DNA of 64,000 nt, from contig CM060732.1 of assembly GCA_030704615.1 (NCBI GenBank), positions 24,428,001 through 24,492,000 on the forward strand, given 5' to 3'. The notes under the pieces are model-generated. The model did not search any database. It was not told the origin of the DNA and was given only the letters and a program-made list of their open reading frames with translations. The translations under genes were made by a program, and so were the position numbers. Of the stretch, positions 7,879 through 39,590 are shown in pieces (positions within the stretch are counted from its first letter, which is position 1; each line of letters opens with the position of its first letter). This DNA is from Takakia lepidozioides (lineage: Eukaryota; Plantae; Bryophyta).

Positions 7879-8920
7879 GGCATCTACCCATCTACATAGT
7901 GCTGCGAGATATACAGGATCTTTGAAGTGACCTCATCAGAAGATCCTACTTCAGACCTACATCCTGTAGAAAATGCCCACACAAAAGTGACTGGGTATGA
8001 ATCATGCTCAAGACACTGCGGCCCAGAGATATGCAAGAGTAAATGAAGCGTCTTACAAATCCGGAGCACTCCATCTCTGGCAGCACTCCCATGCATTGCC
8101 AACCCACATCGCAAGAAGATAGTTCTTCTCAAAGACAGTAACGGGCCTCCATACTTCAGCAAATCAGTAACCGTTCCATTCATATTCATTTGACGCACAC
8201 CTTTCTCCAAGCAGAACAAGCTAGAGAAGCATGTTGTCTACCTACCTTGACGTAACCACCATGGAATCAAGAGATGTGCAAAGAAAAGGCCTTAGTCTAT
8301 CCAGCGATTTTTCCAACGTGACAGCGGGCATATCCTCAAACTGAACCAAAAGCACGCGTCAAGAAGTCTGATAATAGCAGGGCAGTTCAGGGCCGCGTCA
8401 GCAAGAAGCCCTTGGCACTTTCATACAGGACATGTATACCATCATAGGGAAGCTGCAGCTACCCCGAACACGAAGATTCTGCCCTTCCACATATTCTCAT
8501 ATTTGCAAGATTTAAAGAAGTATTTCCGCCACCCAGCTGCTCTTTATAACTTGGCTTCTGAAGCGAGTGCCTTCCAGTCTGAAGGTCCAGCTCGCAACAT
8601 AATTCCCCCACATAAACAACCCCAGTGAAGAACATCTAACCAGTAGAGCAAAGCCAAAAATGATCTGAACAAGCACTAGGTACATTACCAGCAGATCTTC
8701 GCCCAACAACGCACGGATCGGTAGCCACGCTCTGCGTCGTCACATCTTCTGACCCAACAACAATCCTCACATCTGCCACAAATTCCCGTCCATCCTCCCC
8801 CTCCCTGAGCCCTAAAACAGTGTGATCAACTTTACAGGACTACTGAAGCTCAAGATCTGTACAGTCGCTCTGTGAGGGCTGTAGAATCGTAAAAACCTTC
8901 AGATTTTTTGTATTAGGTAG

Positions 8921-9025
8921 AGTCCTGCAACGAGGGCTTTACGCGATTCAAGATTCCATAGCCCCGAGGGCGGTAGCCCGAGGGCGTGGAATCTTGATTC
9001 GCGTTAAAGCCCGAGTTACAGGACT
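8921..9025. repeat. Long imperfect palindrome/hairpin (left cap of the central block)
   Basis: Arms 8921-8958 and 8987-9025 are reverse complements apart from a GA/GA tandem mismatch, one C/A and one T/T mismatch and a 1-nt bulge. Apex: GCCCC-GA-GGGC-GGTA-GCCC-GA-GGGC. Confidence 0.95.
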
Positions 9026-9858
9026 TTCACTCACGTAAAAACTGCAATGTAGACTGTGTGAAAAGAAAATTACCTGGCTATCTGAGATTACGGGCCCAGC
9101 CCATGGGCTCCACGGCATAACGGGATTTTATGCTATTTAAAGCCCACCCAAACTACTGGCGCACATTAGAAAAGGCCCGGGAGTTTAATGCGACCCCTTC
9201 GGTCCTGCCTGCGTGGCACCCCCCGCCACCCCAGCCGCACCCCCTTCGCCGGCTCCTGCGCGGCTCGCGGTCGCTGCACCCCTGCGCCCCCGCGCCACCC
9301 CACCCCCCCCCCCCCCGCGGCCCCCATCCCCCTGCCCGCCCGCCCCCCGGCGGCCGTCACCACACCACATGAGCTCTGTGGCACATGACACCTGTCACCA
9401 CAACCCAACATCGCGCGCGGGACTCATCGTGAGTCGAAAACATGGATCCATACATGGCAGATGACACATACATGAAAGTAACATGATGACCATCACGAAA
9501 GTCACATGATGACCATAGGCGTGAAGCCCTCACATATGCATGTATACACAAGGTTGTACATGTTCAAATTTCAAAATTCAAATTTGAAATTTAGTATTAT
9601 TTTATGGATTGGGTCTACTTCTAGGATTTATGATGGATGTATGTAGGTACGGATGGATGAGACCAGGATGTATGTGTAATGATCCAATCGTCACCTTCCT
9701 TTCATGGTCCTCTCAAACTGTTCTGACCACGAAAGCACAACGTGCAGCCAATACCAGCCGTGCCTTAGGTCCCTGAATTGCGCCACGATATGTCTGATGC
9801 CGAGAATGAAGAAAACATTGCATCCCATCTTGTTTTGTTGCTTTGAAACCAAGTTCAA

Positions 9859-10888
9859 ATGCCCAGTGTAGGTGCTTTTAACCATCATATACTGCAGTGG
9901 CGTTTCCAATGGCATGGCAAGCCTCCTGCCCAAAACTCTGCCGAACTTGCCTACATTCCCTGGAATCGAGTTGCTGATTTCATTACAGGGGAGTCTTCCC
10001 GTTCAGATGGCCCATGCACTTTCAGCAGCCATGAGCAAAGATGTCATCCGGAGGGGTCACTCTTAGCTCCTCGCAGCAACAGTGTCAGGACTACAACAAG
10101 GTACATTGGGCTGCAGGTCATGTGTTGCAAGGGCTACTGAATGATTTCCATGAATGCCCGAGTGCCTGAATCCCCTTGGTGTCATAGTAACGGATTGTTT
10201 TTTTGTTATTGTAGGTATCACTGCTCGTATGGTCCACAGGACAGAACTAGTTCCCTCTTGGAGGTTACCCCTGCAATGGCACACAAGAAACGCCGAGTGA
10301 AGCCTGCAAAGAAGAAGGGGAGAAAGCCAAGAGTCACAACCGCTTCCACTGAAGCAAAGCCAAAACAAATGCGGACCACACAAACAAAATCGGGAGGCAT
10401 GTGAATGGGGCAGGACAGGTCTGCCATAGACCTGCGCATCAAGTAGGTCGCGTTTCATTAGCTCCCCACCTGAGCGATGAGATGAAATCATGGGTGTTAC
10501 ACAACCTCCGTCTCGGACTAAGCATCAACAAGATAATGGCCACACGCAGAGGGTGAGGGAAATCATGGATGGGAGGTTCGAGGTTACTCGTGACACCTTC
10601 TTTCTTTCAAATGACATCCGAAATATTGCCAACAAGTGCGATGAAGAAACATTCAAAAAGCACTCCAATGATGCACAAAGTGTCCGAATGTGGGTGCATG
10701 AAAACCCAGGAAGCGTTTTCTACTACCAGGAAGAGTCTAATCACCCTGCTTGGACGTTGAATGACAGAAAACTCGACCTTCCATTTGTGCTTGGCATACA
10801 AACTGATTGGTAGAGAAAACAGATGCTCAAACACGGCCATCGTCGCATAGTTGCTTGTGATGCAACCTTTGGAACGAATTTAAAGAAG
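9859..10888 (+). pseudogene. N-terminal part of an At4g13970/At1g60560-type MULE-related SWIM-family transposase, decayed
   Basis: Blocks LAYIPWNRVADFITGES, (intron 10101-10214) RYHCSYGPQD, HVNGAGQVCH..SLAPHLSDEMKSWV, RDTFFLSNDIRN, DAQSVRMWVHENPGSVFYYQE and PFVLGIQTDW*RKQMLKHGHRRIVACDATFGTN follow the order I recall for At4g13970. There is an internal deletion, frameshifts and a TAG at 10811. The rest of the catalytic core and the SWIM finger are absent. Confidence 0.8.
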
Positions 10889-11239
10889 GTTCATCAGATT
10901 GTTAACCCGAATTTCTTGAAAGCATGACAAATTAGGTTCTTCATTTGAAGTCCTTTGTTTTTCTACCATTTCCTTTCAAGTCACTTCAGTTACACATGAT
11001 TGTTGTTGCAATACCCGTTATCATCACCACCAATCAGACAACACTACTTTGTTCCAGAGGAGAGACCTGAATCGGATTTTCTTCCGAACTCTACTGAGGG
11101 GACGCCTATGCGTGAGCCACCACCAGTGAACTTGTCACAAGTGGGAACCTCATACTCACAAGATAGTATGGTGTAGCCATCACAGCCTGAAACTGGGGTA
11201 GAGCCCAATCTTGCCTCTCTACTAGCTCTACCTTCTTTT

Positions 11240-11700
11240 CCCTCAAGACCAACAAAAAGGAAGGAGCCATTGGTCGATTATTCCAACTCTATGGTGGTCA
11301 CAGGCTCTGAATACACCATGATTATGAGGAGAAAAGCTTTAATGAGAGAGGAGGTGGAGAAAGAGACAGAAAGAAAGAGGCTGGAAAAAGAGGCCAGAGC
11401 TCGTGCTAAGCCAAATGATACTCGCACTCCAGCCCACAAAGCTGCACAAAGACTTGCTTTGAAAGCACAACGGGCTGCCTTTGATGCTTACTGGGATATC
11501 GAGAACATCAGGAAAATTGGTGACCATTTTCATACTTCATTCTGAGAAGGTCTGAGGGCAAATCCTTATGGCTATACAGGGGTGAATTGTGGATTGACTA
11601 CAATATCTCAGCGACATGCGAGGGAAATAGCTATGCAACGACGCAAGGAAAAACAACAAAACAGGGGACAGGGGTCACCTTCATGGTCACAACTCCTTCT
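11240..11700 (+). pseudogene. Transposase C-terminal-like fragment (resembles the tail of pogo/DDE-1 transposases)
   Basis: KRKEPLVDYSNSMVVTGSEY followed by a K/E/R-rich coiled coil. Stops upstream and at 11543; no DDE core seen. Confidence 0.35.
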
Positions 11701-14700
11701 TTGATGATGCGTGTCTTTGCATTTTGTTTGCAGTTGCCTTTCAAGTTTAGGGTTTTTGGTTAGTCTTCCTCTGTTACTGACCAGCTCCATGACTCTGCAA
11801 TGGCGGGCACTAGAAGCATTCGTGTCATTTACCACTGGGGTAACGACTCATTTTGAGTCGTAAAAGTCAAAAAACTGGGATCGACTGGAAGTTACAACAG
11901 ACTAGTTACAACAGACGTGGTAGTTGGGTTGGACATCCAATGATTGGAGTGGTAAAGGACGCAGACGCACGAACAACTGCTCAGCGATTAATGCGATTAA
12001 TGCTGAAGAACCACGTGGCGTAACCAGGCGGGCCGCCCGTGTGTCTGACCTTTTGGGCTGACTTTGACTTTTCCCTCCGGATGAGTGGACTGACTCACCC
12101 GGGGCGCGGTGACACATGGACGCGGACGTGGATGCGGACGTGGATGCCGATGTGGCGGCGCCGCGATGAGCGGCAATGCTGCCGCGTGGCCACGGCCCCA
12201 AGACGCCACATCGCAGTCGGCCACATCACTTGGAGTGCTGCATGTGACGTCGCAACAGCCACTAGCGAAGTCAACTGCACAACTTCCGGCAGACGAATCC
12301 ACGGGGACCACGTGGAGAGTGTATGGGTCGACGCGTGGCGTCGTCCCCACGCAATGGCAGTGACAGGTACGACTGCTAGTGGAAAGACGCAGAGTGCTTG
12401 TGCTATCTCGGGACTGCTTTGGCCAACTCCGCTGCCACTGTGCTAGTTGGTTGCACTACAGTAGGAAAGCACGAAAAATGAGCACTTGTAGTGGTTTGTG
12501 TGAGTTTCCAACTGACCTGCATTCTAAGCTGAAAATATGGTTCTGATGCATTCTACTGGTTTTAGTGGTTCACCCATATGCAGGGGGAATTGAGAAGCAA
12601 TGATACTAGGCGAGACTGAGAACACAGACCACGATGCATGCACAACATCACGCTAATGAACCAAATAGACGAGGCAACAGGGAGACCAAAGACCATCACA
12701 CATACACATAGAAGGTCGACGGACACGACGACAAGTCAGGAAATGTGATATTACATTCAAATTAGAGACCGTCACGGCACACCTGCATATGAGCAAGACT
12801 AAATGCCAACATACATGGTTGCCGGACATCACTTAAACTGTCATGGCCCAAATGTTCAAAACTGGTAACGTGAGTATCATACACACTTCTATGAGTATCA
12901 TTACACATCCAACAAGGACTACAAACATGAAATGTCACTTGATACTTTCACCTTTCCTCATACTCTTCTCTGGCCACAGAGTCACCGTGCCTTTCACGTG
13001 CACTAGTGTGGTCTGGGGGGGGGCATCGTCCACATTTGGGCAAGGCAATGTAACACTTGGAAGCATGATCTCGTGGACTTTCACCTTGTACCACCCGGAT
13101 CGAATGTCCTTGCAGTGGAACTTGTCAACCCCGGCTATTCCCACCACTTCCGCCTTGGCGGCGGCTGTCTTTGACCGCTTGTCATGGGGGTTCAGGAGAA
13201 ACACAGGATCTGATATCTGCAGACACCAACATCAGGGTCCACTCAGCAACAAACATAGCAATGACAGGGTGAAAGTCAAGCGCAGCTGGGCATGGAAACG
13301 ATCTTGGTTGCCACAATACTGAATCAGCAGCCAATTCACGGTGTACCAATGTACCTTGAAGCGAAGCTCGTCGCTGAGGGTGGCAACTGAGGAAATCTGC
13401 CCACGTGTCTTCAACTGCAGCAGCAAAAAGAGGTTTAGTCAGACGGATAAGAATAACATGAACTCTGGTGGTTGCAATGGTATAAACACACCTCCACGGA
13501 GCAAGCTAACAAACACCCTACTCAGACCCTAGCACTACAACTTCCTGGCAAAAATAACCCTACTAAAAACCAGCCAGGCAAAGCAAGGAGCCATGAATGC
13601 ATGCCTGGGGAACCACGTCCTATTGCGATGATGGTGCCGGGGACAGCCCACTCCTCTTGCTCACCTGCAATGAATACACATTGCAACGCTTCAGGAAGTG
13701 TATCCATAAAGGAAACCAACCAAGTAGGTTTGCGGAGAGGGGCTGGGAACAACCATACCTTGGGCGCTGCCTCCTCATGCTGGGGGGGGGGGGAACCGGA
13801 ATGCTGCCGCCGTAGCACTATGGTCGTAGGCGCAGGACCCACCTTCTTCACATTCGACCCCACTGCCACTCCCTGTACATGTGGTCCCTGCAAAACATAT
13901 AGTGCCAGCCTTGCGTGAGAGGGCATCCGGGGGGAACAAAACAAACATGGACTTTGGCTTCGATGTCATGATGCAAACAATAAGGTTAGTTTCACCTGCA
14001 TGGGCGCAGAAGTACTTCCCCCAACGACCCCATCCTCTCCCACATTCAAGCTGCCAGTCGGGGGCAGCTTCCACGTGCTTGTGAAGACACGCACACCCTT
14101 GGAGCAAAACAAATCTTGGCAGTAGGGCCAGACTGTTTCTAAAAGGTAGTCTGAATCGGGCCCCTCACTGACATTGCCAGTGACATCAAACGACAATGGA
14201 TGGACCATGTTCAAAGGGGAGTTCCCCCTCCCCTTGTGTGGTGAATCATCCACTAGGAGGGTGTTGGATTCGTTAAATCCTGAAAATTCCGACCACACCC
14301 TCGACAGTCTCTTCTGTAAGTTCTGTACGGCAGGCCCCTTTGTGGGGTGTGGCTCTGTCAAGGGGTCACACTCCTCTTGTGACCACACAAAGAGGGGAGA
14401 ACCCTTGACCCCCTGCATGACCACTTTGAAGATGTCTGCAACATTCCCCTTGGAAGCACAGGACCATATCCCAACGTAGAAATACCGGAAGAGAAGGTTT
14501 AAAAACTCGCAGACCTGGGGCCTTGGGAAAACATACTTGTTGGTGGTCAACACCCATGGCCAATGACGCCTCGGGTTGGGCTGAAAGTTAGGAATAGAGT
14601 GGCACATGATCCCGTTCAGGTCTAGAACAATTAGTTTCGACTTTTCTATGAAATGAGCTTTTGAAGGGGTGTCACGGGGTCTCACCTCAGTGGGTTGGGA

Positions 14701-16744
14701 GACAACAGTCACCCCGGAGGGCAAAGTTTCGGTCCCCCTGCAGCCTGGACCAGGCAAACTACCACCCTCTCCCCCTACAGCTTCCCCTTTTCCCCCATCA
14801 TGAGCAATGACCCCCCCATCGTCCATGTCATCCCCACCAACTTGCTGGACCTCTCCCTCTTCAACGAGTGGACCCTGCCCCCCACTGTAAATATCATCAA
14901 CAACAGCCCGGACCTCTGTCACATCCCTACCCACTACAATTACTTCCTCCTTGTCAGGTACAATGGTCGCAGCAGGGGGGTCTTCCATAATGCCACCCGT
15001 CACACCCCCTTTTTGCCCCATCATGAGTTCCACTATCTTCTTCAGTTGTGCTTCCATTCCCCTCTCCCGCTCCGCAGAGAGAGCCGCAAGCCTCTCCAGG
15101 GCCCCGATGCGGGCTGCCATTGAGTTCCCCGCTCCCTACGCATACAAACACCCACCCGTACTGTTAAAAACCAGAAGAAGAGGCCGAATGTGCAGGATTT
15201 CAGGCATTCGGAGATGGCTAGGTTTGGCATAACACCCCCCGTGTACCATGCGTGGGGGCCCCACATACCCACCAAATCTTAGTACAACAACAGATTCATG
15301 AATGGAAACCGGACTTCAAAACATACCTGGCTCAAAACAGACTCTGATGGGGTGCCAGTCGCAGCGTTCTTGCACTCCGCCCTGAGCTCGGACAGTGACG
15401 GGCTCCGCGCTTTGCGTCTTTTCTGTATTTGCCCATCCACACACTGTCAGTACAAAATGCCAGGAGCATATGGACAAAGCACTGCCCTGCATATCACATA
15501 ACAACTAATTCTGCACAAGCAATAAAACCCACTCGTGGGTGTCTCTTCCATCAGAACATGCCACAACGTAAGAGCAATGAGAAGGGGGTGAGGGAGATTA
15601 CCAAACGGGCTGCTTGGCCTGCAACTCCTGCCCGGCCCCAACGCAAGGGGTTCGTGACACAAGCACGCGCTTGCTTCATCCCTTCAGCCTTTGCAAGTCC
15701 ACGAGGGGACTCTCAGTAGGCAACAAGCTTATCCCAATAGGCGGGTTCAGTGTTCATTGGCCTCACACCAGTCTTCGCCCATTTATCTTTCAGTTTTGCT
15801 CTTTCTCCTTTCATTATCTTCCCACATTGCTTCACTATAAAATCACGATTGGCAGGGATAGGTGTGTACTCGTACATTCCATTTATGCCCTCTATTATTG
15901 TTGACATGGCACTCTGGGACTGCTGGTCAATGTCTTGTACGCTTGAGTCAAGGTAACGCAATTCCAGGCCATGTTCCTTACCTTCGCAGCCAGCATTGAT
16001 GACTCCATTTCCATGCACCTCCACCTTGTGGCGCTTTAGCCCTGCAGCCACCCTTCCCTCTCCATCTCCTTCCCATTGTTTCATGGCATGACGTCGTTCC
16101 TTCCTCAGCTCTGATGTCCGTTTCCTGCCCCCATGCTCTGGAGCAGCGCCGTCATACGTTGTGGGGGGTGACTGATGTGTGCCGGAGGGGGGAGGGCCGT
16201 ATGGAGATGTGGGAGGCCCCCATTGTGACGTGGCAACATCAGGAAGCCAGCGCCACGACCCCGAAGCAGGGGGGGCTCCCCATGGTGCACTCTGTTGTGG
16301 AGACCATCCGGCAGGGGGTGGGTGCCAAGGTTGGTGTTGGTTGGCATTGTGTGGTGGCTGTGAGTGCTTTGCTGCAGCTTCACTCCTCTTCTGCTGCCAA
16401 AAACATCCCACACACAAGGTGCATCAGTTGTAGTCCTACTGAACACAACGTCACCAGAGCACAAACCATCCCACAACCACAACTATGGATTGGCTGACCT
16501 CAACCCCACTCCCCTGCAGCGCAAAGTGCCAAAAACTGAAAAGGAGAGGGACAGAATGTCCTCATAACATGTAAGCCCATTCATTGGTGAAGAAACAGAA
16601 TGTGGGCGGGTTCACATCAGTACCACATGAAACTTACCAGGAAACAGAACATCCATCCGGGTTTTGCACATATCCAGTGGACATCTATTCACACAATCAG
16701 CAAATGGCTGTATGGCGGAGCCCAGCAACGGAGCCCCAAAAGGC

Positions 16745-17015
16745 CTAAAGACTCTCAATGTTGGTAATTAAACACAGGTGCAGACACAATTCAATTGAAA
16801 GGATATTGCAGACCTAGCCTCGTTGGAGTTATCAACGCATATAGCAAATGCGTACTCCAACGCAGGTGCAATGACGTGACAAAGCAACATTTCCTTGACC
16901 TAAAAACTAGTCCCTCTGCACACAGTGGTAGACCCGAAGGTTTTTCCACGATGTCCTCCCCCATGACACAAATTGAAAACATGTTCAGGGATGTTTTCTG
17001 CCTAACTTCATTTTC
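16745..17015 (-). repeat. Scrambled fragments of the LINE family found at 49185-54012
   Basis: 16745-16793 resembles 49431-49477; 16812-16900 resembles 50112-50205; 16925-17015 resembles 49664-49755. A fourth piece, 18129-18189, resembles 50267-50326. Confidence 0.8.
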
Positions 17016-18128
17016 TGCCCAATCAGATCTCCTCTACGCTGATGATGTTGCCCTTTTGGCACAATCCCCGGTCTTTCTGCAACGCCATATCAAAATTTTG
17101 GAACAGTTCTGCAAAGACTATGGGATGCAAGTCAATCTTAGAAAGACCAAGATCATGGTCTTCAATGGCCAGGCTGATCGTAGATTCATCTTCAACCAGC
17201 AGGAAATTGAGATTGTCAAATCATACCGGTACCTAGGTCTGGTTATCCACTCCCCCAAGTTTCACTTTGCAGCCACTGCCTTGGACATATTGACTAAAGG
17301 TAAGGCGGCCTCTGTCCGCCTTCACGCCAAATGCAAGCAAATACATCTGCGGCATCCCCCGACCAAAAAGTGGTTGTTTGACACCGTCGTCAGCCCTGCT
17401 ACCATCAATGGTTGTGAGTTTTGGGCACCTGGTGTCCCTGTCTCCTGGTGGGAAAAGAATTTGGAACCATTACAGTCATCTTTTCTCCAAGCAATGCTTG
17501 GCGCCAGGAGCACAACTCCATCTCAGATCCTAGGTGCAGCGTTCGCATGTGTACCATTGCAATCCGAGGCACAGTTCAGGCTTACAATCTTTCTCCATAG
17601 ATTGCAAGCCCTTCCACCCAAAGGGCTAGTGGCAAGGGCCCTCACAACATCTATGAGGCTCAAAGCTGCAGGTTTCGGGAACTCCTGGTATGCTCGAGTG
17701 GACAGTTTATTGAAACGTAACGGACTTTCTACTGCTTTCCTATTACCAATGAACCCACATGAGGTGGACATCACATCCAGACATGACCGCAACAGACTCA
17801 TTCGGAGAGAGCTTATGGAATTACATGTCAAGAGAACTTGGATGCTACCCAATCTCACAACAAAGCTCCACTTCTATCGAGAGACATTCTTGGTGCTCCG
17901 CGATGATATAATCTTCAGACCAAATTACGTTTCAGCACCCTTACCTCCTTCCCTCTTGAGGGCATTGGGGCGGTTCAGGGTGGGTTCCCACAACCTACGG
18001 ATAGAGACTGGCAGATGGGAAAACCTGCAACGGGAGGACCACCTATGTCCAGCTTGCATAGGGCGCAGCAAGGAAATTGAAACTAAAGAACACTTCTTCT
18101 TCTACTGCCCTGTATACTACGACATCCG
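17016..18128 (+). mobile_element. Non-LTR retrotransposon (LINE) RT C-terminal fragment, a second family, in intron 1 of the TnpA-like gene
   Basis: LLYADDVALLA, VNLRKTKIMVF, YRYLGL, LFDTVVSP...GCEFW, RFRVGSHNLRIETGRW and CPAC...ETKEHFFFYCPVYYDIR (CCHC). Stop-free but truncated at both ends. Confidence 0.9.
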
Positions 18129-20240
18129 TTTGAACAACTTTGTGGATATGTGCATCCCAGTTTCAGTTTCAGGAGAACTCAACGCCCAGAAAACAAGAAC
18201 ACAAGTAGGGGTAGAACTCACCTCATGCGCAGCGGTTTTGTGCCGTTTGCGCACCTTTTGGAGAGACTCTGCAGATGGAGGTGCAATTTCCTCCGAACTG
18301 TCCTCCACCTCATCGTCGTCGCCCATGCTATACTCGCTTGTGTCAAAATCCGAACTCGAAGACCGCCCACCGCTCTGCCTTCCCTCTCGCACCGACGCCA
18401 TCTGTACCGGATTCAGTCGAGCCAGGCGGGGGCTCCTTCGCACCGCGGGGCTGGAATGTGCAGAAGTGGGAGGAGGTGATGTTGCCTCGGCGGTCGACCG
18501 CTTCTTACTAGGCGTGGACATAGACCATGACAAAGATGAAGACGAGCGAGGACATAGACCATGACCAAGACAAAGACGAGCGAGGAAGACCAAGACATGC
18601 AAAGGAGGAAAGAGGGACAAGGAGGGGAGTGTGATCACACCCCCCCCCCCCCCCCCGATCTGTAGTGAAGATCCGGCCGTTGTTGATTTCAAATATGAAC
18701 ACGTGTCGTGCATCCGTCACTATGGCCTTTTCGACTTTGAGACGTTAAACCCTAAACCACTTACAATCCTCCAGACAACTAGATGTAGTGATTCACACAA
18801 CTGACATGGATCCGTTAACTTTTTTTCGTTCAAAATTAGGTGAAGGAAACACACTGCAATGATGCCGTGTATGGCTCCGCTTTACATGCATTCTTGGAGA
18901 AAATGCGCATGATGTGTGAGAAGTGAACACAGTGCTCTGCCAAATGATTCAGCAAAAACAAACTCAACTGTAGTGGTTCTCCCATCGCAGAGAAGGGTCC
19001 ATTCGACACCCATCACACCATGCCAAGTTGAGGTCCTCACACACACACCTACACATCGAGAATTTGCGAACCCACATCAGCTGGGAGAACATGGAAATTA
19101 CCCCGTGGATCACATGCAAGCATGAATGAGAAATGGGTTTATGTTACATGGGAGATTTTGGTGTACCTGCGCGACATGCAACTCTGTCTACATACTCCAT
19201 AAGTCGCTGTCCCAAGACCCAAGTGGACAGGGGAGGCCGGTGAGTCTGTACCACAAATGGTAATCATACAGCAGAGGGTACTGCTGCCCAACGTGCAAAA
19301 GCCGCCGGCTGCAGGATGTTAGGCATGCGAACTCGGGCACATCACGCCTCCTCTGCACCCCACTCCGTCCCAACCAGTGCAAAACAACCGTGCATGCATT
19401 GACTGCCCTCTGGCTTTCTCTCCAGGCATTTGGGGGTCTGCGATCTGCTACACGTAAGTGTCTTTGAATGCGACGATCAAAGGATCCGGTCACTTGCAGT
19501 TGCCGTCTCAAGGGCAGCATTGCAAGAATCAGAATTAAGTAAGAAAGATGGTGGAAGAAGCTGCAAACAGCAAATGAGTGAAGTGGCAGGGCGATGCTCC
19601 ATTTTTAACATGCTCCCCTTCCCGCCATGGTGATAGACCCACACAAATGGACTCCCTTCCCGCCACGGTGCAATTTCACGGCAACGAAACGGGATTGTCC
19701 GCCGAAACGTGATTTGGAGATGGCCTAAGACAAGTGGCGCAGGTTCTGGCCTTGTAGTTAGGTTGTTCACACTTCAATGCACAAATTTCATACACATTCA
19801 ACCATATGCCCAAGATCACAACGTCGTCAATCGTGAAAATTGAAATTCCACGTACGTCCTCCGATTCCTCACACACACACGAACTGTAGAGATAGGTCGT
19901 TTTCCAGGATGTCGTTGTTTGAGTCGATTTTGGTCATTTCTCTCAGTGTCTTGTTGAAAAGATTCTAGTTATGATGGGAAGCATCGTGATGGCTTTTAAA
20001 TGGTTTGCTGTTGAGTGTAACTTTTCATCATGTTGTGGAATCTACCGGTTGGTATAAAATGTCATCTGTCTTCTCTGCCAAAGGATGTGCGGCTGAACCT
20101 TTCAAATTGAGATTGTAGGAGGAGGGAATTGACGGTAGTGAAATGGGAGTGGCAGAGCCAAATTGAGGAATCTCTGCAAAGAGAATCCGGCCCCCTGCAA
20201 CGGCGTGCACAAACAGCATTGAAGAGGCTCCCCAACAAAA

Positions 20241-20453
20241 ATGAGTTCCCCTCGCCCATGCGGAGGACTTCCAATTAATCACCCTTGTAGACAGAACTCC
20301 CGAGATGATAGGTTGTGGGAAAGAGAAGTGGCACGTGTCCGAGCCCTTGGGCTTTCAAGGATGTCATGCCCATGTGAACGTTGTTTGGGCACTACAAGTA
20401 GATCTGAGGACGGTGTGCGCACACTAATGAGGAAGACATTCCAGGGTTGGTAA
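20241..20453 (+). pseudogene. Possible N-terminal transposase-associated (CPC..C) remnant of CACTA TnpD
   Basis: RMSCPCERC motif inside the CACTA element; no Transposase_21 core follows. Confidence 0.35.
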
Positions 20454-21360
20454 TTACCACAAGGCAAATTGCAGATGTGGGTAGTGAAGGGGAAGATTAT
20501 TTGGATATAGATAGTGAGCCCAGCTGAATCTCAGTGTCCATTAAGCCAGCAGCTCATAGACGAGAGCTATGTTAAGGACTCTTACTGTCCTTAGAACCCA
20601 TTTTGTACAGTCCTGCAAGCGCGCAAGGGCGAGACAGTTAATAGTATCGATAATGTCCCGGTATGTGGTCCGTACTGTCTTGTGAACAAACTTTTTTTTG
20701 TTCTGCCAATATTGTTTCTGACATGTGAGGAGAGGATCGTCTTCATGTACGGGAAGTAGACGTGAATGTGTGCATGCATTTTTTGGCCCAGCTGCATGCT
20801 TTCCAGGAACAAAGACCAGTGGAATGGGAGGTGTCTCCAAAGGAGCAGGACCGAACGACACCTTTTTGTGCTTCCCTTGCTTTCCTTCTCACCGTTGTTG
20901 CATTCTCCCACCTGCCCAACAGCAGCACTCTCGAAGCAATAGCATGACATATGTTGCAACATGGTCTTCTTCACCAGCGAATGAGCTTTTTTGCTACATG
21001 TACTGCCACGTCCACATTAACATTGATCCCTGCAAGCACTTGGCAAGACACCCCAGAGCCGCAAATCCAGCAACCACCACAAACACATCTAACTGATTGT
21101 AGTGACACGGGAATAGCTCACTTGTAGAGGAATTGAACCTCCAGCCAAATGAATGGCTCTGCCCCTTGTAGCACAAGTGCGATGCAAAAACAAGGTGAGT
21201 ACAAAATGAAGAAGCACTTACGAGGTCCCCATCCCTCGGATGGGCTCCCACTTGTGCTCTGGAACTGTGCAGGCCTGACTAGCACCAAATTGCATGAATC
21301 CTAAGCCTGAATGTCAAATGCAGGTTTATGTCGCGATGCAGGTACGCCATCATCTAACCT

Positions 21361-22068
21361 GTAGTTTCCAGTTTCACTGGTGTCACAACTGCCTTCAAGT
21401 CAACATCAAAATTAAGTCCACCTATGCGCAAATCACAGAATGTCTCATGACACCATATGCCGCCGCTGGTTTGGCATGATATGATTGTAGTTCACAACCT
21501 TAATGAACGCTTTCAGCCTTGACCTCTTTGCGATCTTCTTCTGTGACTGCTTCTTCATAATTTATGAAAGGGAAAAGCAGCTACACATCAAATTCTTGCA
21601 AGTACAGGGGGGTACTCAGGCCTCCTTGGGAGAAAGAGTGCCATAAACACAGACACATCCTTAAATGTAAAAATTGGAGAAGCGAACGTCTGGTGGCAAT
21701 AACTGCCTAAACCAGAATTATACTCCATTCCAGCGCACATGTAAAGGGTCGGATGATAACTCGGAATCCCAGTTGGAGATAATGAGACGAATACATGACT
21801 ATCTTGCGAGTTTCAACTTTCTTGGAGGTAGTTTCCAGTTTCTCTGGTGTCACAACTGCCTTCAAGCTGGGTTTAGAGGAATTAAGTCTCACTCGCAAAT
21901 GCAGAATGTCTCCCTCATCTGCGTGGGCAAAATGGGGTTTGGCATGATATGATTGTAGTTCACAACCAAAGGGCATATTCTTCAGCCTTCACGTCTTTGC
22001 GATCTTCTTCTGTGACGCCTTCTGCATAACTTGTGAAATGGAAAAGCAGCTACACATCAAATTATTGC
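21361..22068. repeat. Two diverged direct repeats (~240 bp, 467 bp apart) inside the CACTA element; probably a duplicated domain of a decayed minus-strand gene
   Basis: GTAGTTTCCAGTTTC.CTGGTGTCACAACTGCCTTCAAG at 21361 and 21828. Downstream GGCATGATATGATTGTAGTTCACAACC...GGAAAAGCAGCTACACATCAAATT is shared. The minus strand reads LKAVVTP.KLETT in both. Confidence 0.8.
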
Positions 22069-27590: not shown

Positions 27591-27596
27591 TACACT

Positions 27597-30500
27597 CTAT
27601 CCTTCGCTCAGCCATATTGTTGAACACTCCCTGTCCACAAGGGTATTGTTCAGAATGACATCTGCCACAATTCCAGCTTTGACGATGCAACCATGGACCT
27701 CTTTGCCCTTCCCCAGCAGGCTCGCACATGCACTACAAACGCAAACAACTGGTTGTGGCAAACTGGGAGCAATATGTGTCAGAAGAAACCACTTATACAA
27801 ATCTACAGCTTACAGGCTGTCTCTATCCTCAAAATTGGCAGCACATCACCCGCTGCTATGACATATATTGCCCTAGACACACATTGCCCTAACTGCCAAC
27901 CCCCAAGATGCTACCCCCACCAGACTTCTCTCACTTGGGTCCTTGCAAGGCTGACTTCCAACTTTGACTCTGTGCATAGGGCCTATCGGACAACATACAC
28001 CAGCAAGCCCTCCCCCTATCCTGCATCAACACATCTCAGTCTTATCAACTGCACAACGTATGATAGGAGTGAGTGCAACATGGGAAAGAGCCACAACACA
28101 TGATGAGCTGTAGGGAAGAAGCAACATCGTGCAAGTAAAGCAAACGATGAAGCAGAAAGACGAGGCAACATGGGAGAAGGGAAAATGGGGTCCAAGGGCT
28201 GAGAAGGTCAACTGGTCAACAATGAGGAACTGGCTCTGGAGCACTATGTTGATGATTAAAGGGAGCAGCAAATACATGTGGGGCATCGCAGCAAAGTGCA
28301 TGCCAACGAGGGTCAGAATAGTGCAAGAAAGACTCCACGGATGGTGGGCAGCCAAGGGAGATGCAGTGAGACAAGGCACTCATGGCAAGGGAGCTGCCAA
28401 GACAAAACTGTTGATTAGGCTACGGAGAAAAAAGAAAGCACAAGATCAACTACGAGGAAAAGTAACAATTCAAGCATGGGAGCTGCTGCTAAAACATGAG
28501 GAGGAAGACATACGAGGTGAAGCATCAAGGGAACCAGTAGGAGATGAGGAAGATGGAGCACACTTTCTTGTCAAAGGTTGGCGGCGAAGAATGCAACCCA
28601 GCAATCAGAAAGTGAGGCACCCGAGGCTGGACTGCTGCAAAGAGGTACAAAGACAGGAGCTGAGAATGAGATGTTGCCTTTCCTTGAAGTTCCCCACACA
28701 AGGGCTGTTTGGCAAGCAAAACCCCTCACTTATGAAAAGTGGAAGGGCAAGGTAGAAAACCTGATGCCTGAAATTGATGGGAGCTCGTAGGAGACTCTGC
28801 CAAGAAGACTCCAATCAGCTGTTGCCAACAATCGGACCAGTGAAAGATCGCCCTTGGCTGGCGCAACACCACAAAATAAGTGCAGCCCTGATAGCATGGT
28901 GAGTGGGGCACCAACAGAGCCAGAAAATGAGGGAGAAGGAGGAGACTTCCCTGCCAAGAAAGTCAATGCGGGCCTGCAGTGGCATGCAAGGAAAGGGACA
29001 CCGTAAGTGTTGCCAACAGATGTAAATCAGTGCTCATTCATTTGAAAGCACCACGGGAGATGAAGGAAAAGACACCTACAGGGACGTTGAAGCATAAAAG
29101 AGGAGAGCACTTCACTTGGGAAGAAAGTGAAGCATTGGAGAACGAGGCTGATGACTGGCAGTCTGAAAAGGAAAGGCGGTTGTGGGAAACCCTGCCAAGA
29201 TCCAAGACAACCAACCTCTTTTGTGTGAGAGAAGTCAAGCTGAACCTGCTTATCATATCGAGTAGGATGGACCAGATGTAAAGCTGCCAAGCCAACCAAC
29301 ACTCATATTCGCACTCAAGCAACATAAGCTGGAGCCATTTTCAGATTATGAGTACCCGTGTTTTAAGAATACTCCTTATTCAACTTGCGGTGAACGGGCA
29401 GAAAACTTCACAATGTGCAGCAGATTAATGGACCAGGATGCGGAGCTGAATTGGGTATCCAGTTAGGCAATGCTGGTTTCAAAACCCCGTTCCATCCCTG
29501 CGTTTCGAAGATCTGGCTTGAATGGGCACACTCCGACAGTGGAAGGCTCACGGAGTAATGAGTTTGGGCTGATATGCATGCTGACATGCCATGCCGGTGC
29601 AAAGAACAACGTTCTGAGTGGCGATTGTGATCTCAAAATCTGCCCCTGCATTCAAGCTGATTTCTCTCTCGAGCAGAGCCGCCTTGTGGATGTTCCAGCC
29701 AGTGTCCAAAAACAGCTCAAGTGCAAGACAACAACATCAGCAAGGCATGGTTAGCTAAGCAAGGTCATGGTGGAGAGGCATTTGAACTCTCTGAACGTAA
29801 TGTGGTCGGACTTCACCCCCTCCCACATCAACTGCTCATAGGTCTCCAAAACCTGCAATCCCCGCCCCTGTTGTGCATGTCCTGCGATCATCACTTTCCA
29901 CGACACCACATTTTGCTCAGCCATATTGTTGAACACTCCCTATCTAGAAGGGTATTCATGTTCAGAATGACATCTACCACAATTCCAGCTTTGACGATGC
30001 AACCATGGACCTCTTTGCCCTTCTCCAACAGGCTCGCACATGCACTACAAACACAAACAAACGTAATGTGCTCGGGCTTCACCCCCTAGACCCACATCAT
30101 TTGCTCATAGGTCTCCAAAACCCGCAATCCCCGCCCATGTTGTGCATGTCCTGCGATCATCACGTTCCACCACACCACATTTCGCTCAGCCATATTGTTA
30201 AACACTCCTTGTCCACAAGGGAATGCTCCCACGTTTGGCATACATGTCGACGAGGTATTGTTACATCTGGTACAGTTCCAGCTTTGACAATGTCACGATG
30301 GACCTCTTTGCCCTTTACCAAGTCTCCAGGGTTGCCAGGTTTGCACATGCATTGCAAACACAAATGAACGTAACCCGGTCAGGCTGCACCTCTTCTCAAC
30401 ATTTGCTCATATGTCTCCAATGCCCTCATCCCGCACACATGCTGGCCATATCTTGCGAGATTCAGCGTGTTCCTTGAGACAACATCTTGTTCAGCCATGT

Positions 30501-30650
30501 TATCAAACTCTCCCTTTGCAACTTCATAGGTCTCCAAAGCCTCCATCCCACGTCCCTGCTGTGCATACCCTGCAAGCATCGCACTCCACGACACTACATC
30601 TTGGCAAAACATGCTGAAATAGCTCGAAGAAGAAGGTGCCCTCACCACAT
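27597..30650 (-). pseudogene. PLS-class PPR gene fragments, interrupted by decayed retroelement-like sequence at ~27900-29400
   Basis: KPEHITFVCVCSACASL..GKEVHGCIVKAGI..DVIL.NTLVD, FNNMAEQNVVSWKVMIAGHAQQGRG..LETYEQL..EGVKSDHITF and DVVSWSAMLAGYAQQGRGMEALE. Frameshifted. Confidence 0.85.
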
Positions 30651-31894
30651 TGTCCTCTACCTTGTGTCATGACCCATTGCGGATTAGACTGACCATGAAC
30701 CCAAGAAGACCTCTTGTGCGTGCTGCTTGTATCTCTAGTCAGGTAATGTGGGATTGGTTCGTAAGAACCACCACGGTGCAGCTGAGCGGGCAGAGATTAA
30801 AATATGGGTTGCTAAGACCAAGCTGATTCCCCCAAGAACCTTGTGATCATCAGGAAGAATACCAAATCATGGTACAAAGGGGAGCCAAGAGCCCACATTT
30901 GCACATAATGCGCCCTTGACGCCATAAACGCTTGCAACAACAGGACATGGACCTCGATTTGGTCTTCGTCCTTCTCACATCACTTGTTCGTCTCTCTCTC
31001 AAGCCTCCATCCCTCTCCCAACACTTAGACAAATTCAGGCAAAGGACAAAGTTACTCTTCCACCCTTAGATCATTTTACATCCGACGATTAGAACAATCT
31101 CTACGAGCCACACAAGCCCTAAAATACATTAAAATATTCCACGTCATGAGCCATGTGGAGCACTTATAAAAATTCCATTTTTGAATAGGGTGTGCAATGA
31201 ATGCCTAGTTGTTAAGAGTCGTTCTCTAGTGCTTAAAACCACTTGTAATTGCTGTTTTTAAAAATAAAATAAAAATACGTAATTGAATTAAATCGCCGCG
31301 AATATTGTGCCGACTGCGGAGTCATTGATGCAACTTCTATCCGCCATTAGAAATGTGAATTTATCCGTTACGACTGTGCAGTAGTAACAAACATCTCAAA
31401 GTTGTTCCCTCAGTGGTTTTGGACGTGCAGTCGATTCGGAAAAGACACGAATGCTTCTAGTGAAGGGTGCCTTTACCAACTATCAGGTACCCTTCATAAT
31501 TGAATTTCACTTCACCCATAGCCCTCTTGAAGTTGGGGGACAAACACATGCAATGGGGGCACACCATGCTTGCTTCAGCAGCATTTGTTCAAATCTTCAG
31601 CATGGAACATGCACATTTGCATGCAACCCCTTATGCACTTCTGGTGCAAACGAGGCAGTTATGAAAGACCAAGCAGTTCCTCTAGTTCAGCAATACTTAT
31701 GAACAGCCCCACAAAATCCAGCCTCAGTTTTGGAAAGAGCAAACACATGCACTCAATTGGATCCCCACCTTAAGCCGCCGACCGTGTCTTCTATGAAGCA
31801 TTGTCAATTACTTCTCAGATTTTGGCGTGGACGATCATGCCCCACCTACAAGCAAAGCTGAGAGGGCTGGACTTACTCTAAGAGCACCCAAGTT

Positions 31895-34819: not shown

Positions 34820-35353
34820 AGGTTTTGAAGAATTGCCAGCCCACATTCCCCATGAGGTCATCTTGCACCTTCTTGAAAAGGTGCAAACGGAAGAAGGGTA
34901 GGACAAAGTGTGGGTGTACAAAATCCAGGGAGGAGTCAGGACGATGACAGTCCACATGGGCGACCTGAAGTGTTTCTACACAATGGATGAAGAGGAGCAA
35001 GGAGCTGTGGTTTTGTGCCATGTGCTGTTAGGTTTCGTGGACATGCTTGTGTTGAAGACCTGGCACCACACAAGCAGCCGCTATAAAGGGGAGGGTGTTG
35101 TGGATTGGGGGTACCATGTAGATATGGGAGAGGGATGGGTACAAGAGTTTCTGGAACTCATCCCAGAAAGTAAGAGGGGCATAATAGTCGTAGACCCCTC
35201 TAAGGGGTTTTTGGAGGATGAGGTCCGTAGCTATGCAGGACTGAATGGTCAGAGATTGTAAGACTCTCCTATTTTCATTGACGACCTGGTATTGGCTGAA
35301 TTCATTGCACCAGACTCTCGTTTTGTGCCTCCCTATTTCGGGGTTTTTACATG
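34820..35353 (+). pseudogene. Unknown decayed cargo ORF
   Basis: Protein-like frame EELPAHIPHEVILHLLEKV..*..VWVYKIQGG...LNGQRL*DSPIFIDDLVLAEFIAPDSRFVPPYFGVFT* with scattered stops. Confidence 0.35.
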
Positions 35354-35404
35354 AAAGTCGGCTTCAGACATATAGTACATGCATGTTGTAACAATTACTT
35401 CTCT

Positions 35405-36565
35405 CAGAGTTGGTATGAGTTGAAGACTCTTGGTTCAGGCTTTCCTTCATTCCTCTAGAAAGTCCTTCACACATGCATGAATCTGCTGAGTGTAACCCGC
35501 CCAACAATCAGACCCCAACATGGCCAGGGCTTTAGGCTCGGCCTCCAAAAAGTTCGTGAAAGTGGGTGAAAGTTGGTGAATAGAGGTGCAGGGAGAGACT
35601 ATGTTTGAGATGGTACTGAATACTCTAAGACGTTGTTTGCCATAGCGTTGTGGCCATAGACCCCGCATCCATTCTTGGGCAGAAGAAGAGGCGATAGACC
35701 TATCTTCGTGAGGGGTTCAGTCCAGTTGTGGGACTTATGTTGGTATCAAAAATTGGTTCAGGAGATTGTTGTAGCTTTCCTTCATTCCTCTAGAAAGTCC
35801 TTCACACATGCATCAACCTGCTGGGGATGACCTGCCCAACAATCAGACCCCCACATGGCCAGGGTTTTAGACTCAGCCTGGATCGCAGTTTGTTAAACCT
35901 CTTGAAAGTTGGTGAACAAAGGTGCAGGGAGCGGCTATGTTCGACATGGTCCTGAGTACTCATGACACGTTCTTTGCCATAGCGTTGTGGCCATAGACCC
36001 CGCATCCATTCTTGGGCAGAAGAAGAGGCGATAGACCTACCTTCGTGAGGGGTTCAGTCCAGTTGTGGGACTTATGTTGGTATACAAAATTGGTTCAGGA
36101 GATTGTTGTAGCTTTCCTTCCTTCCTCTAGAAAGTCCTTCACACATGCATCAACCTGCTGGGGGTGACCTGCCCAACAATCAGACCCCTACATGGCCATG
36201 GTTTTAGACTCAGCCTAGATCGCGGTTTGTTAAACCTCTTGAAAGTTGGTGAACAGAGGTACAGGGAGCGGCTATGTTTGACATGGTCCTGAGTACTCAT
36301 GACACGTTCTTTGCCACAATGTTGTGGCCATAGACCCCGCATCCATGGTTGGGCAGCAGAAGAGGCGATAGACCTACATTTGTGAGGGGTTAATCCAGTA
36401 CTAGGACTTACGTTGGTATACAAAATTGGTTCAGGAAATTGTTCAGGCTATCCAGATTTCCTACAGAAATCCCTTCGCACAAGCATCCATCTGCAGTACA
36501 CCCCAAGAGGAGCAGGGCTTTAGGCTGAGCCTCCTGATTTTCAATGTTGGTGAACAGAGGTGTCA
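35405..36565 (-). repeat. Tandem array (337-bp period, ~3.5 units) built from the 3' end of the LINE family at 49185-54012
   Basis: GAGTACTCATGACACG at 35954 and 36291 (period 337). Units match 49187-49470 (TGTGGCCA.TGACCCCGC, CCTCTAGAAA.CCCTTCACACA.GCAT, AAAGTTGGT.AACAG). Confidence 0.85.
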
Positions 36566-36769
36566 GGAGTATGGTCCTGAAGAGGGTTGCTCACTGATGA
36601 GAAAACCCCAACACTGAGTGATTCCAACAACTCCCAACATGCGTCATTCACTTTCAACTCCACCTGTTGCACCTACTTCAGAACATATGCAAGTGCATGA
36701 ACCCGTGCAAGTGCAAGTAAGGTGGGAGAACCTTCAAACCATGTGAAAGCAAAATGAAAACCATGAATA

Positions 36770-37672
36770 CCAGGAGTACACATTGGACATGAATACATGG
36801 AAAGATTGCTGTCACAATCTGTTTTTTGGCATTTGCATTGTTCAAGCAAACATCACATGCTTCCAGAATTCCACCCTGAAGGGTCACACAAACGTAGAAA
36901 AGAGGCAAACTATGTGATGCTAGTGAAAGAGGTTCAGGATGCTACTGACCAGTCAACCTCTTTGAAATTCCACTCATAATTATGCACCTGAACCTCTTGC
37001 CTAATCATTCTCTCTTTCCAAACATACACACAAATATCCCACCGAAAGAAGAAGTCTGAGTGATGAAAGTGATTGCTCCCCCAATGCGGCAAGACACGCA
37101 AAAACACCGAGGATGAGTTCTTCTACATATGCATGAAGGAAGCAAACATGACATGCATCACTCCATCCTCAATAGTTAGGCAAATGTCACCAGCCCTGGT
37201 CCAAGGTCTTTCAAGTCTGCAGCCCTTCTGAAGCTTGCGCATGATGGGGGAAGGAAGTTCGTCTAGCAGTTTAATGCAGTCCCAGCCTTCATCCATCCAT
37301 TGAAACAAGGTAAGAATATGAAAACACTCGTTCTCCTTCGAAGGGTCCAGGCCCAAAGCATGTGGCCCCCCACTCTTTGTTAGGAGCACACATGAATCTT
37401 GACTTGAGTACTATGGTGTTAGGCTGTTTTGCAGCTGCATTGTTGGTGTCATCGTAAAAGCCAAGCCAGCCCACTCTACTTGCAGATACTTGTGCTGTAA
37501 GAATGATGTCCCCTGCTGTGGATTTTGACCAATCCACCAACGCTTCCAATCCGGAGATGCGAGTCCCCACGATGCCAGTAATATCTCCTACCAACTCCTT
37601 GTGAGTGTCGACATCAACAAAAGCTTCCTCTTGTAGCCAGGAGCTGCCTACTCCTTTTTGAGTGTCTGACAT
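36770..37672 (-). pseudogene. Unknown decayed intronless cargo gene with a Cys-rich C-terminus
   Basis: ORFs 37289..37672 and 37123..37389 overlap by frameshift. The downstream frame has stops and ends near CKCQKTDC...CPMC. Confidence 0.35.
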
Positions 37673-39267
37673 TGCTAAGTGCGAGAGGCGGAAGTGAGAG
37701 AGGCAGCAAGGCTAGGCAAATAGGTGAAAGAGAGTGCGATGAGGCAATGGGGGATATGAGGAAACTCAACGAGTTTGGGAGTGCTGAATGGCAGTGTCGT
37801 GTGGGGAGAGTATGTGTTTAGTGAGGGTGGAGAACATGACTTTCGGAGGGGGTAAATCATGTGCTGCACGATTTCGGATGGGCACATGCATCTTGAGGAG
37901 CAAAGGGATACTGATTCCACCATCCGCTGAGGTGCGCATTGGTCCACATGTATGGACAACACATGCATGAAGTGGAGGCAATGTCTCTGATTGGTAGCCT
38001 CCACCCACATGATAGTAGGGCGGGAAAAAGTGGCGGGTGCTTCTGAGGGATGCTTCGTTTTGAGTTGGCATTGCCACAGTCAGTATACTCATTTTCGGTG
38101 GGGTGTTTTGTTCACAAACGTGGTTGGGGAGGCATTATATTTATTGCTATCTGAACCCACTGGAGTGGGGGCAATATAGCTGCATTTTATGATGGACATA
38201 AAGCTTAGTCTTCACATTTTAGACATTTTGGGGTCCGAACGAACTTGTGTCCACGTCGTTCCCTGTAACATCACTGGTAGCTCTGTCCTTGCACCTATTC
38301 TCTGCAATCATATAAATAACAACATTCCATGGGCATTGTATTCCTGCCGGTTGTGCATGCTCCCTTTCATGTGGAACACAAGTATGGGTGATCGTTCTTC
38401 AATACCTTATGTATTGGACGCCAGAGAGCATTGGAAAATGTCTTTGAACCCTAAATGCAAGTCCTTTGCTAAGGAAACAATACCAACTTCAAATGAAACA
38501 GTTGTACATGGCCAGCGACTCAAAGTAGGTATTCAACTACAAAGATGCATGTAAATGTGTAAATTTGGAATGCCATCTTCATTTGCAAATGCTTGCCTCA
38601 TGATGGAGAAACTGAGTTCGAGCCCAAACATTTGAAGAAGGTCTCCTAATTCGAAATACCTACTGAACTACAGTGACCCAAACCAAAGATCCAAACTCCC
38701 AGCAAGTTGAACTACATCCCAACTCACATGTAAGAGTTTGATGAGGCTATAAACCGAAAGAGAATGAGCCCTGTATCTGATGCTATTGTTATGATGGTCT
38801 CCAATACTAGAAAGTCGCCTCTTCCAGGCAACAATACGCAGACCTCGGTTTCAACCCCGTTGAGGCGGTTCAGAGTGTGTCCTAAACCGTAAACCTCAAT
38901 GAAAAGCAACATACAAGTCCAGAGGGACAGGTGGAAGGATAGGACACTTATTGAAGGTAAAAAATAGCCACAATATTGGAAGAGCCAATAGCAAGCTCCC
39001 AAATTTTTGGGTAGTTATTGTACAAGTGTCAATATTTAGTGGAGTAGTGTTTTCTAGGATACGACATGTGTTGGAATAGGGTTCTCTAGGGTAGAACATG
39101 TGTTGGGCCTTGACCACTTGCTTGATGGGTTGGCCCGCTTGTCCAAGGCTTAATAATAACTCCTTACTAACTTAACAAACATGACCATTGGTGTGACAAA
39201 TTCATAGACTAGATTAAGAATGAATACCTTGATAGATTAGTGTGGCTTCAGTGCGCCATTGATACCG

Positions 39268-39590
39268 TTTTACGTACTAGAGAATGCACCCCCTAGGGCG
39301 CATTATGGCTCATAGTGAGTCACTAGGGCGAGGCCGGTAGGCCAAGGCCCAAGGACAAACTAGGTGCCATAATGTGCCCTAGGGGGCGTGTTTCGTGCGT
39401 AAAGGAATTTTGGGGCAGATTCTACGAGGCCCGTGATTGGCTGCAGGCCATAATGAGCCGCTAAACAACCGATTAGGAGAGTCAAACTGCCAATTGGGAA
39501 TGCAGAATGCGCCAGCCCCTGGAGCGACAATCTTCTGCTTCCTAATTTGCCTCAAAAAAGGCATAATCTGCCCCCAAAATCCTTTACGAA
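39268..39590. mobile_element. Small non-autonomous hairpin-plus-inverted-repeat element (~325 bp)
   Basis: Hairpin 39268-39403 (arms CCCCCTAGGGCGCATTATGGC / GCCATAATGTGCCCTAGGGGG; apex GGGC-GA-GGCC-GGTA-GGCC-AA-GGCCC). It is followed by ~24-bp inverted repeats CGTAAAGGAATTTTGGGGCAGATT (39398-39421) and AATCTGCCCCCAAAATCCTTTACG (39565-39588). Confidence 0.75.

Follow-up and report, generated by a model that had tools for sequence, protein, structure and literature searches.

Two hairpin-ended elements in Takakia lepidozioides are members of a widespread transposon family with a probable rolling-circle mode of movement

We analyzed a stretch of 64,000 nucleotides from Takakia lepidozioides (Bryophyta; assembly GCA_030704615.1, contig CM060732.1, positions 24,428,001 to 24,492,000 of the forward strand), hereafter the window, which carries two long hairpins, H1 and H2, some 30 kb apart. 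H1 is followed by one arm of an inverted repeat, H2 opens a complete small element, and the sequence between them holds the remnant of a MULE/SWIM-type transposase, a CACTA transposon, a decayed pentatricopeptide-repeat (PPR) gene, a solitary CACTA end and LINE-derived repeats (Table 1). A preliminary description of this DNA had taken the block that H1 opens for a single large transposon, capped by hairpins and loaded with cargo genes. The results presented here favor another arrangement, to which we give a probability of roughly 60%: the window would contain two separate copies of one small, non-autonomous class of hairpin-ended, Helitron2/Helentron-like transposons, and the 30 kb between them would be unrelated debris.

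Table 1. Positions in the window of the two hairpins, of the repeats and flanks that accompany them, and of the other features lying between them.
Feature	Position	Strand	Basis
Outer flank of H1, CAGATTTTTTGTATT	8900-8914	+	Weakly mirrors the ~12 nt that directly follow the hairpin
Hairpin H1	8915-9032	+	DNA fold, covariance model, arm match
Hairpin-proximal inverted-repeat arm of the H1 copy, ACGTAAAAACTGCAATGTAGAC...	9033-9058	+	Position, and CGTAAA start as in the foreign family
MULE/SWIM-type transposase remnant (N-terminal), not belonging to the hairpin element	9946-10960	+	Translations, phmmer, tblastx
Complete CACTA transposon, not part of the hairpin element	11808-22843	+	23-nt inverted repeats 96%, GGG on both sides
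Decayed PLS-class PPR gene	27600-30666	-	Translations; Pfam PPR match that passes the curated threshold (E = 8.5e-7)
Solo 3′ end of a second CACTA, flanked by AAG	31233-31462	+	Shares its terminal 23-mer with the first CACTA
Outer flank of H2, ..CCGTTTTACGTAC	39264-39277	+	TTTACG mirrors the CGTAAA at 39398
Complete non-autonomous element of ~311 bp	39278-39588	+	Hairpin, inverted repeat, 143-bp body, inverted repeat
Hairpin H2	39281-39395	+	47-nt inverted arms; covariance model
Hairpin-proximal inverted repeat of the mini-element, CGTAAAGGAATTTTGGGGCAGATT	39398-39421	+	92% complementary to the distal one
Distal inverted repeat of the mini-element, AATCTGCCCCCAAAATCCTTTACG, ending ...CCTTTACG	39565-39588	+	Ends CTTTACG as in the foreign family

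Folded as single-stranded DNA, H1 reaches -42.1 kcal/mol, compared with -18 ± 2.7 for shuffled sequences (z = -8.9), and its arms match in 45 of 59 positions, those of H2 in 42 of 57. The long hairpin with which the preliminary description had opened its block is thus present, and ACGTAAAAACTGCAATG directly follows it at 9033-9049; the repeat of H1-type copies reads CGTAAAAACTGCAATG. Direct alignment of the two hairpins shows that they have only their tips in common, namely CGAGGGCGGTAGCCCGAGG and CGAGGCCGGTAGGCCAAGG, which occupy an equal position in each. The tip of H1 is CCCC-GA-GGGC-GGTA-GCCC-GA-GGG and that of H2 is GGC-GA-GGCC-GGTA-GGCC-AA-GGCC, the former displaying a pairing-preserving change (GGGC-GGTA-GCCC). 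The motif common to both tips, CGAGGSCGGTAGSCCRAGG, occurs twice in the window, each time at a hairpin tip, compared with 0.33 occurrences expected for the window. The outer flank of H1 agrees with the start of the post-hairpin sequence in 9 of 17 aligned columns, so that the palindrome reaches slightly past the hairpin, and an outer mirror of this kind is also present at H2 and at several of the foreign copies described below. By the Helitron2 convention, H1 would be the 3′ terminal stem-loop of a minus-strand element.

Two further observations concern the surroundings of H1. The 64 kb contain just two copies of the 9-mer CGTAAAAAC, at 8888-8896 and 9034-9042, which form a direct repeat 146 bp apart on the two flanks of the hairpin; the left copy lies about 18 nt outside the palindrome without abutting it, and with the right copy the family's inverted repeat begins. 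The pair may have arisen by chance, be the remnant of another copy's end or represent a footprint. Just downstream of H1, at 9279-9348 / 9460-9517, there are C-rich tandem repeats of 24-25 bp and a 23-bp tandem repeat; such repeats are typical of HINE/DINE-1 elements and, by this analogy, may belong to a truncated H1 copy.

H2 opens a complete element whose two 24-nt inverted repeats match in 22 positions. The preliminary description had noticed it as a mini-element, with a hairpin and CGTAAA/TTTACG repeats, abutting the end of the large block, and in this it was right; the length that we measured is about 311 bp. No target-site duplication was found at the flanks of the mini-element, and its distal end is adjoined by ...ACTT. 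Its body bears no similarity to the sequence downstream of H1, and an exact scan of metagenomes with its 24-nt repeat returned no match.

A scan of public metagenome contigs for the tip motif CGAGGSCGGTAGSCCRAGG returned more than 120 matches. About half of these are GC-rich bacterial contigs without a palindrome, i.e., chance matches, and in about 60 others, which are low in GC, poor in open reading frames (ORFs) and eukaryote-like, the motif sits exactly at the tip of a palindrome of 110-150 nt. Several families can be distinguished among these foreign palindromes; their stems have no sequence relationship to one another, yet all have one tip, CCCGAGGCCGGTAGGCCGAGGG. No occurrence of the 21-mer tip was found in 596 Gb of prokaryotic sequence, representing the genomes of 185,579 species, and the degenerate 19-mer motif is absent from the viral contigs scanned. 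When 18 foreign hairpins were folded to a consensus, 25 of the 33 pairs proved to be maintained through changes on both sides, and the tip to be invariant (C-C-C / G.A / GGCC-GGTA-GGCC / G.A / G-G-G). A covariance model built from these 18 hairpins alone, with those of the window excluded, matched both H2 (40.8 bits, E = 4.3e-7) and H1 (39.2 bits, E = 1e-6) over their full length on the + strand, and gave no third match in the window. An Rfam scan of the window and of 15 foreign loci found no family matching the hairpin.

The best sampled of the foreign families, family B, is represented by at least 12 independent loci and has a sharp left boundary, ^TATAGGAGAAGGGCC, followed by the hairpin, (C)GTAAAGCAGAGCTGGGATTTT, a body of about 150-250 bp and AAAATCCAGGCAGTGCTTTACG^. 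Its copies are 244-352 bp long and have unrelated flanks beyond both ends; the proximal repeat begins (C)GTAAAG and the distal one ends CTTTACG. The mini-element equals these copies in size and layout, including the CGTAAAG start and the CTTTACG end, and the window hairpins resemble family B at the hairpin base and junction (GTA-TAGGAGA and CTA-CGTAAAG). Eight foreign copies with both ends showed no consistent direct repeat at shifts of -4 to +4; in the family, any of the four bases can stand beside the distal end, and a W-rich ...YG or TA precedes the hairpin side. At four independent family B loci, hairpin and proximal repeat are present with no distal repeat within 2-13 kb. Likewise, the inverted repeat of H1 has no partner anywhere in the 64-kb window, its 17-mer having been tried at up to 3 mismatches, and H1 therefore fits this end-only type. 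A second foreign family of like design has the ends TTATCTCCC and GGGAGATAA, and contig assemblies often break at the hairpin, as they would at a dispersed repeat. The Helitron2/Helentron-type layout pointed out in the preliminary description thus holds for the mini-element, and it recurs in many copies, without target duplications, in other eukaryotic genomes. Taken together, these results place the hairpins of the window in a widespread family, for which rolling-circle movement is probable.

Some of the foreign contigs display further particularities. In L028, a second hairpin (981-1088) lies about 230 nt from the first and has a variant tip, CCGAGGCCCGTAGGGCCGAGG, in which the stem is longer by one pair and the loop shorter, another pairing-preserving change. 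Five contigs from one peat metagenome (L006, L008, L038, L047 and L095), all GT-rich and low in GC, carry GGCGAGGCCGGTAGGCCGAGGCC without a surrounding palindrome, and their strand skew is so strong that ORFs of more than 2000 codons stay open.

In the model that we favor, members of the class would consist of a terminal stem-loop of about 115 nt, free in its stem sequence and bearing the tip C-C-C / tandem G.A / GGCC-GGTA-GGCC / G.A / G-G-G, then a 20-24-nt repeat starting CGTAAA, a short body and a matching repeat ending TTTACG, and they would insert without target duplication. The copy at 39278-39588 would be complete, and the copy running from 8915 to about 9058 would be a hairpin end only, its far end having been truncated at insertion or lost later. 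Such elements would depend in trans on RepHel, which combines an HUH nuclease with a helicase, and would move via a rolling-circle intermediate of single-stranded DNA. Recognition and termination would be signaled by the stem-loop behind the subterminal repeat, with the invariant tip as the protein contact; we infer both the dependence on RepHel and the role of the tip. The 30 kb between the hairpins would then be ordinary intergenic sequence, made up of a MULE fragment, a CACTA, a PPR pseudogene, a solo CACTA end and LINE repeats, with no cargo. The preliminary description had proposed that a single-stranded DNA or hairpin intermediate may be involved: the layout does point to a mechanism of the single-stranded DNA, HUH type as the best interpretation, and membership in the Helitron-like HLE2 group is putative.

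Several points weigh against this model. The foreign loci were retrieved with a motif derived from the window, so that their tips match by construction and only the stems, the layout and the boundaries count as independent evidence. The copies compared are the two of the window and those on foreign contigs, none other coming from the source genome. Two apparently bacterial contigs, L012 (10151-10265) and L079 (7159-7273), contain the same 22-nt tip in a hairpin; these two hairpins have a common inner core and differing outer stems, and L079 carries a class-A RNase P gene. Among about 70 ORF pieces of the window, none gave a Pfam match to RepHel, as gene or as remnant, consistent with the preliminary description, in which no HUH Rep/helicase was visible, and the long ORFs of the fetched loci, read by eye only, included no obvious one; the link to HLE2 is therefore one of architecture only. 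Moreover, the stem-loop of about 115 nt (arms of about 50 nt) is roughly 10 times as long as the palindromes of HLE2/HINE, which have stems of 5-10 bp, the inverted repeats measure 20-24 nt versus 8-16 nt in HLE2, and the flanks of the family are not visibly T-T, unlike in HLE2, which inserts between T and T in T-rich surroundings.

A further-reaching interpretation, which we advance only tentatively, is that the hairpin of about 115 nt with its invariant 19-22-nt tip is an undescribed, deeply conserved cis-element that defines a distinct, HUH-mobilised lineage of Helitron-like elements in plants and other eukaryotes. The tip would be bound or nicked by the transposase, the stem would need only to pair, and the large block of the window could even so represent a decayed member of this lineage that had captured genes. 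The invariance of the tip across otherwise unrelated families sets these elements apart from HLE2, and identity of the tip across unrelated stems makes it a concrete candidate for the recognition site of a rolling-circle transposase on single-stranded DNA. Current detectors seek inverted repeats of 11-18 nt together with short stem-loops, so that a lineage with a 115-nt hairpin and repeats of 20-24 nt would escape them, and HLE2-type elements were thought to be absent from land plants until 2024. The distinct superfamily put forward in the preliminary description is not upheld, since the architecture already exists in HLE2, which is known in land plants (PMC11417382).

It is unlikely, in our view, that one hairpin-ended element of about 30 kb extends from H1 to the TTTTACG end at 39274, as the preliminary description had claimed for 8905-39275. 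Such an element would lie on the minus strand, head-to-tail with the mini-element, its MULE and PPR fragments having been captured and the CACTA and LINE sequences inserted later. H1 and H2 are indeed equally oriented, and the TTTACG that closes 39266-39274 is typical of the family and lies 3 nt from the next hairpin, an arrangement that would suit tandem rolling-circle elements. The letters of the closing inverse reported at 39257-39275 are present, but its only exact part, ACGTAAAA, is at chance level, with 0.73 occurrences expected in the window. Beyond the family-wide CGTAAAA, the repeat of H1 scores 3 against the 39274 end (null 2.5 ± 1.4; P = 0.44), and under like scoring the mini-element's own repeat pair reaches 13 (P < 2e-4); true members have 20-24-nt repeats that match, whereas here only the class motif is common to both ends. 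We found no subterminal similarity between the H1 end and the 39274 end, no inverted pair that joins the two ends of the block, and no repetition between the flanks at 8905 and 39590. Long, near-symmetric inverted repeats and a 9-11-bp target duplication are both absent from the boundaries, as the preliminary description had itself noted. In addition, the outer TTTACG-type mirror recurs at the flank of H1 and at the foreign loci L064, L013, L065 and L112, where no second element follows, and, judged from the sequence, the simpler reading of 39264-39277 would be an outer mirror or target motif of H2 rather than the end of a 30-kb element.

The content of the block bears on the same question. 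Capture of gene fragments is known for Helitron-like elements (PMC11417382), and the 1-kb transposase fragment and the PPR pseudogene resemble captured pieces. Interrupted genes were searched piecewise by reference, with no joined or spliced model. The MULE/SWIM transposase remnant of the preliminary description was recovered in part, as an N-terminal fragment of about 1 kb that lacks a SWIM motif; it contains an in-frame stop and a frameshift, and its homology extends no further than the first residues of the MULE domain. The closest relatives, at about 50% identity, are unnamed fragments, and the named relatives found by phmmer are SWIM-type proteins of Adiantum and Taxus, with Pfam MULE and ZSWIM1-3 RNaseH-like domains. 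Two ENA contigs carrying closer MULE relatives (L001 and L002) matched the window by tblastx in 9946-10960 only, and they contain no hairpin, no ACGTAAAA and no match to the covariance model. A link between the hairpins and an At4g13970-type transposase, as suggested in the preliminary description, is thus not borne out by this fragment and these two loci. Nor could the proposed Ulp1-like, zf-XS-like and OB-fold cargo be retrieved: Pfam gave no Ulp1, zf-XS, OB-fold, SWIM or RepHel match for about 60 ORF pieces in and around the block, a motif scan found neither a C48 nor a SWIM signature, and a homologue search with the 191-aa ORF at 22842-23414 returned no match. Across the roughly 70 ORF pieces of the window, Pfam matches were limited to LINE RT/EN, NIF, PPR, F-box, Kelch and VTT. 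A PPR pseudogene is found instead of this cargo, and three of its internal segments (27603-27748, 29912-30060 and 30181-30364) are 92-96% identical, which at the sequence level indicates a recent local duplication.

Nested CACTA and LINE-derived sequences, also part of the preliminary description, are confirmed. The CACTA transposon, about 11 kb in length, has CACTA termini and a 3-bp target duplication. It carries, on the minus strand, an uninterrupted ORF of 384-389 aa (13969-15135) for a NIF/FCP1-type phosphatase, whose best database relatives are angiosperm proteins of 30-39% identity, and it also contains an ORF piece of 598 aa (16768-18561) that represents the C-terminal part of a LINE reverse transcriptase. 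The subterminal sequence of the solo CACTA end is only about 70% like that of this transposon, and no matching 5′ end was found in the window; a candidate 5′ end near 25.6 kb was rejected, as it has only an internal similarity of 120 bp. At 35439-36561, three tandem units of 337 bp, about 90% alike, are related to the 3′ region (49187-49464) of a LINE located on the minus strand at 49191-53690. This LINE looks intact, with ORFs of 295, 827 and 260 aa and with EN and RT domains, and its closest database relatives have only 42% identity. Together with those of the NIF ORF, these matches show a plant lineage that lacks near relatives in the collections searched. Because no pair-specific repeat exists, the interior is heterogeneous and includes a partnerless second CACTA end, end-only copies are common in family B, and the MULE loci are free of hairpins, one 30-kb element is unsupported, and in an annotation the block should appear as a mosaic that consists of ordinary elements and of pseudogenes, not as one giant transposon.

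We consider it improbable, and somewhat more so than a 30-kb element, that the hairpins are fold-back miniature inverted-repeat transposable elements (MITEs) of a cut-and-paste (DDE) superfamily, in which case H1, for example, would represent a Mutator-type MITE flanked by a 9-bp duplication, and the inverted repeats would be the usual ends of a MITE. The two copies of CGTAAAAAC around H1, alone in the 64 kb, have the length of a Mutator duplication, and the MULE remnant lies 900 bp from this hairpin. However, the left 9-mer stands off the palindrome and the right one coincides with the start of the family repeat, there is no duplication at H2 or at the eight two-ended foreign copies, the ends are asymmetric with a hairpin on one side only, and the related MULE loci are without a hairpin. 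Very improbable, finally, is that the hairpins are not mobile ends but genes for structured RNAs (hairpin-RNA or miRNA-like precursors), or palindromes that the host retains for regulation: the folds are strong, the loop is conserved and MITE-derived hairpins can yield small RNAs, but no Rfam family was found in the window or the foreign loci, the hairpin is always accompanied by the inverted-repeat module, and many copies have unrelated flanks and lie where assemblies break.

The stretch rich in transposable elements is bordered on the left by host genes, namely an exon with a VTT domain (TVP38-like; 4161-4643) and an F-box/Kelch gene (6667-7932), and on the right by an exon at 63546-63914 that, judged by eye only, resembles elongation factor Ts. 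The segment 39965-41700 contains tandem repeats of about 107-110 bp rich in TTGGGCC motifs (40811-41319 and 41611-41697), as well as direct duplicates of 800 bp and inverted copies (39965-40199 versus 40494-40699 and 41306-41520).

The hairpin elements can be compared with several known systems. With IS200/IS605 and REP/RAYT, the bacterial HUH Y1 systems, they have in common hairpin-defined ends, the lack of target duplication and, if the model is correct, a structure-dependent recognition; unlike them, those systems are prokaryotic and have no 20-nt inverted repeats, and the 21-mer tip does not occur in the 185,579 prokaryotic species genomes scanned. The tip contains GTAGGCCG, which we take, as a lead and not as a test, to resemble the GTAG head of E. 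coli REP sequences. The transposase fragment 0.9 kb from H1 and the 9-bp direct repeat around this hairpin recall MULEs, but neither long symmetric inverted repeats nor boundary duplications are present, and the transposase piece is a truncated N terminus. Canonical Helitrons (HLE1) likewise lack target duplications and have a hairpin near one end as terminator, but their 5′-TC and CTRR-3′ ends, their hairpin of 16-20 nt and their A-T target sites are not seen here, and HLE1 has no inverted repeats. In HLE2 elements the inverted repeats are short, a stem-loop comes after the right one, and the target is not modified (PMC4067079), and for Helitron2 an overabundance of 3′ ends and one-ended transposition have been described (PMC3627910). 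The elements studied here resemble HLE2 and HINE/DINE-1 in their asymmetric inverted repeats, one terminal and the other subterminal and followed by a terminal stem-loop. The likeness to HLE2 further includes the lack of target-site duplication, non-autonomous copies of a few hundred base pairs, some with internal tandem repeats, the frequency of copies that retain just the stem-loop end, and occurrence in land plants, HLE2 having been reported in 2024 from 13 land-plant species, including Sphagnum (PMC11417382).

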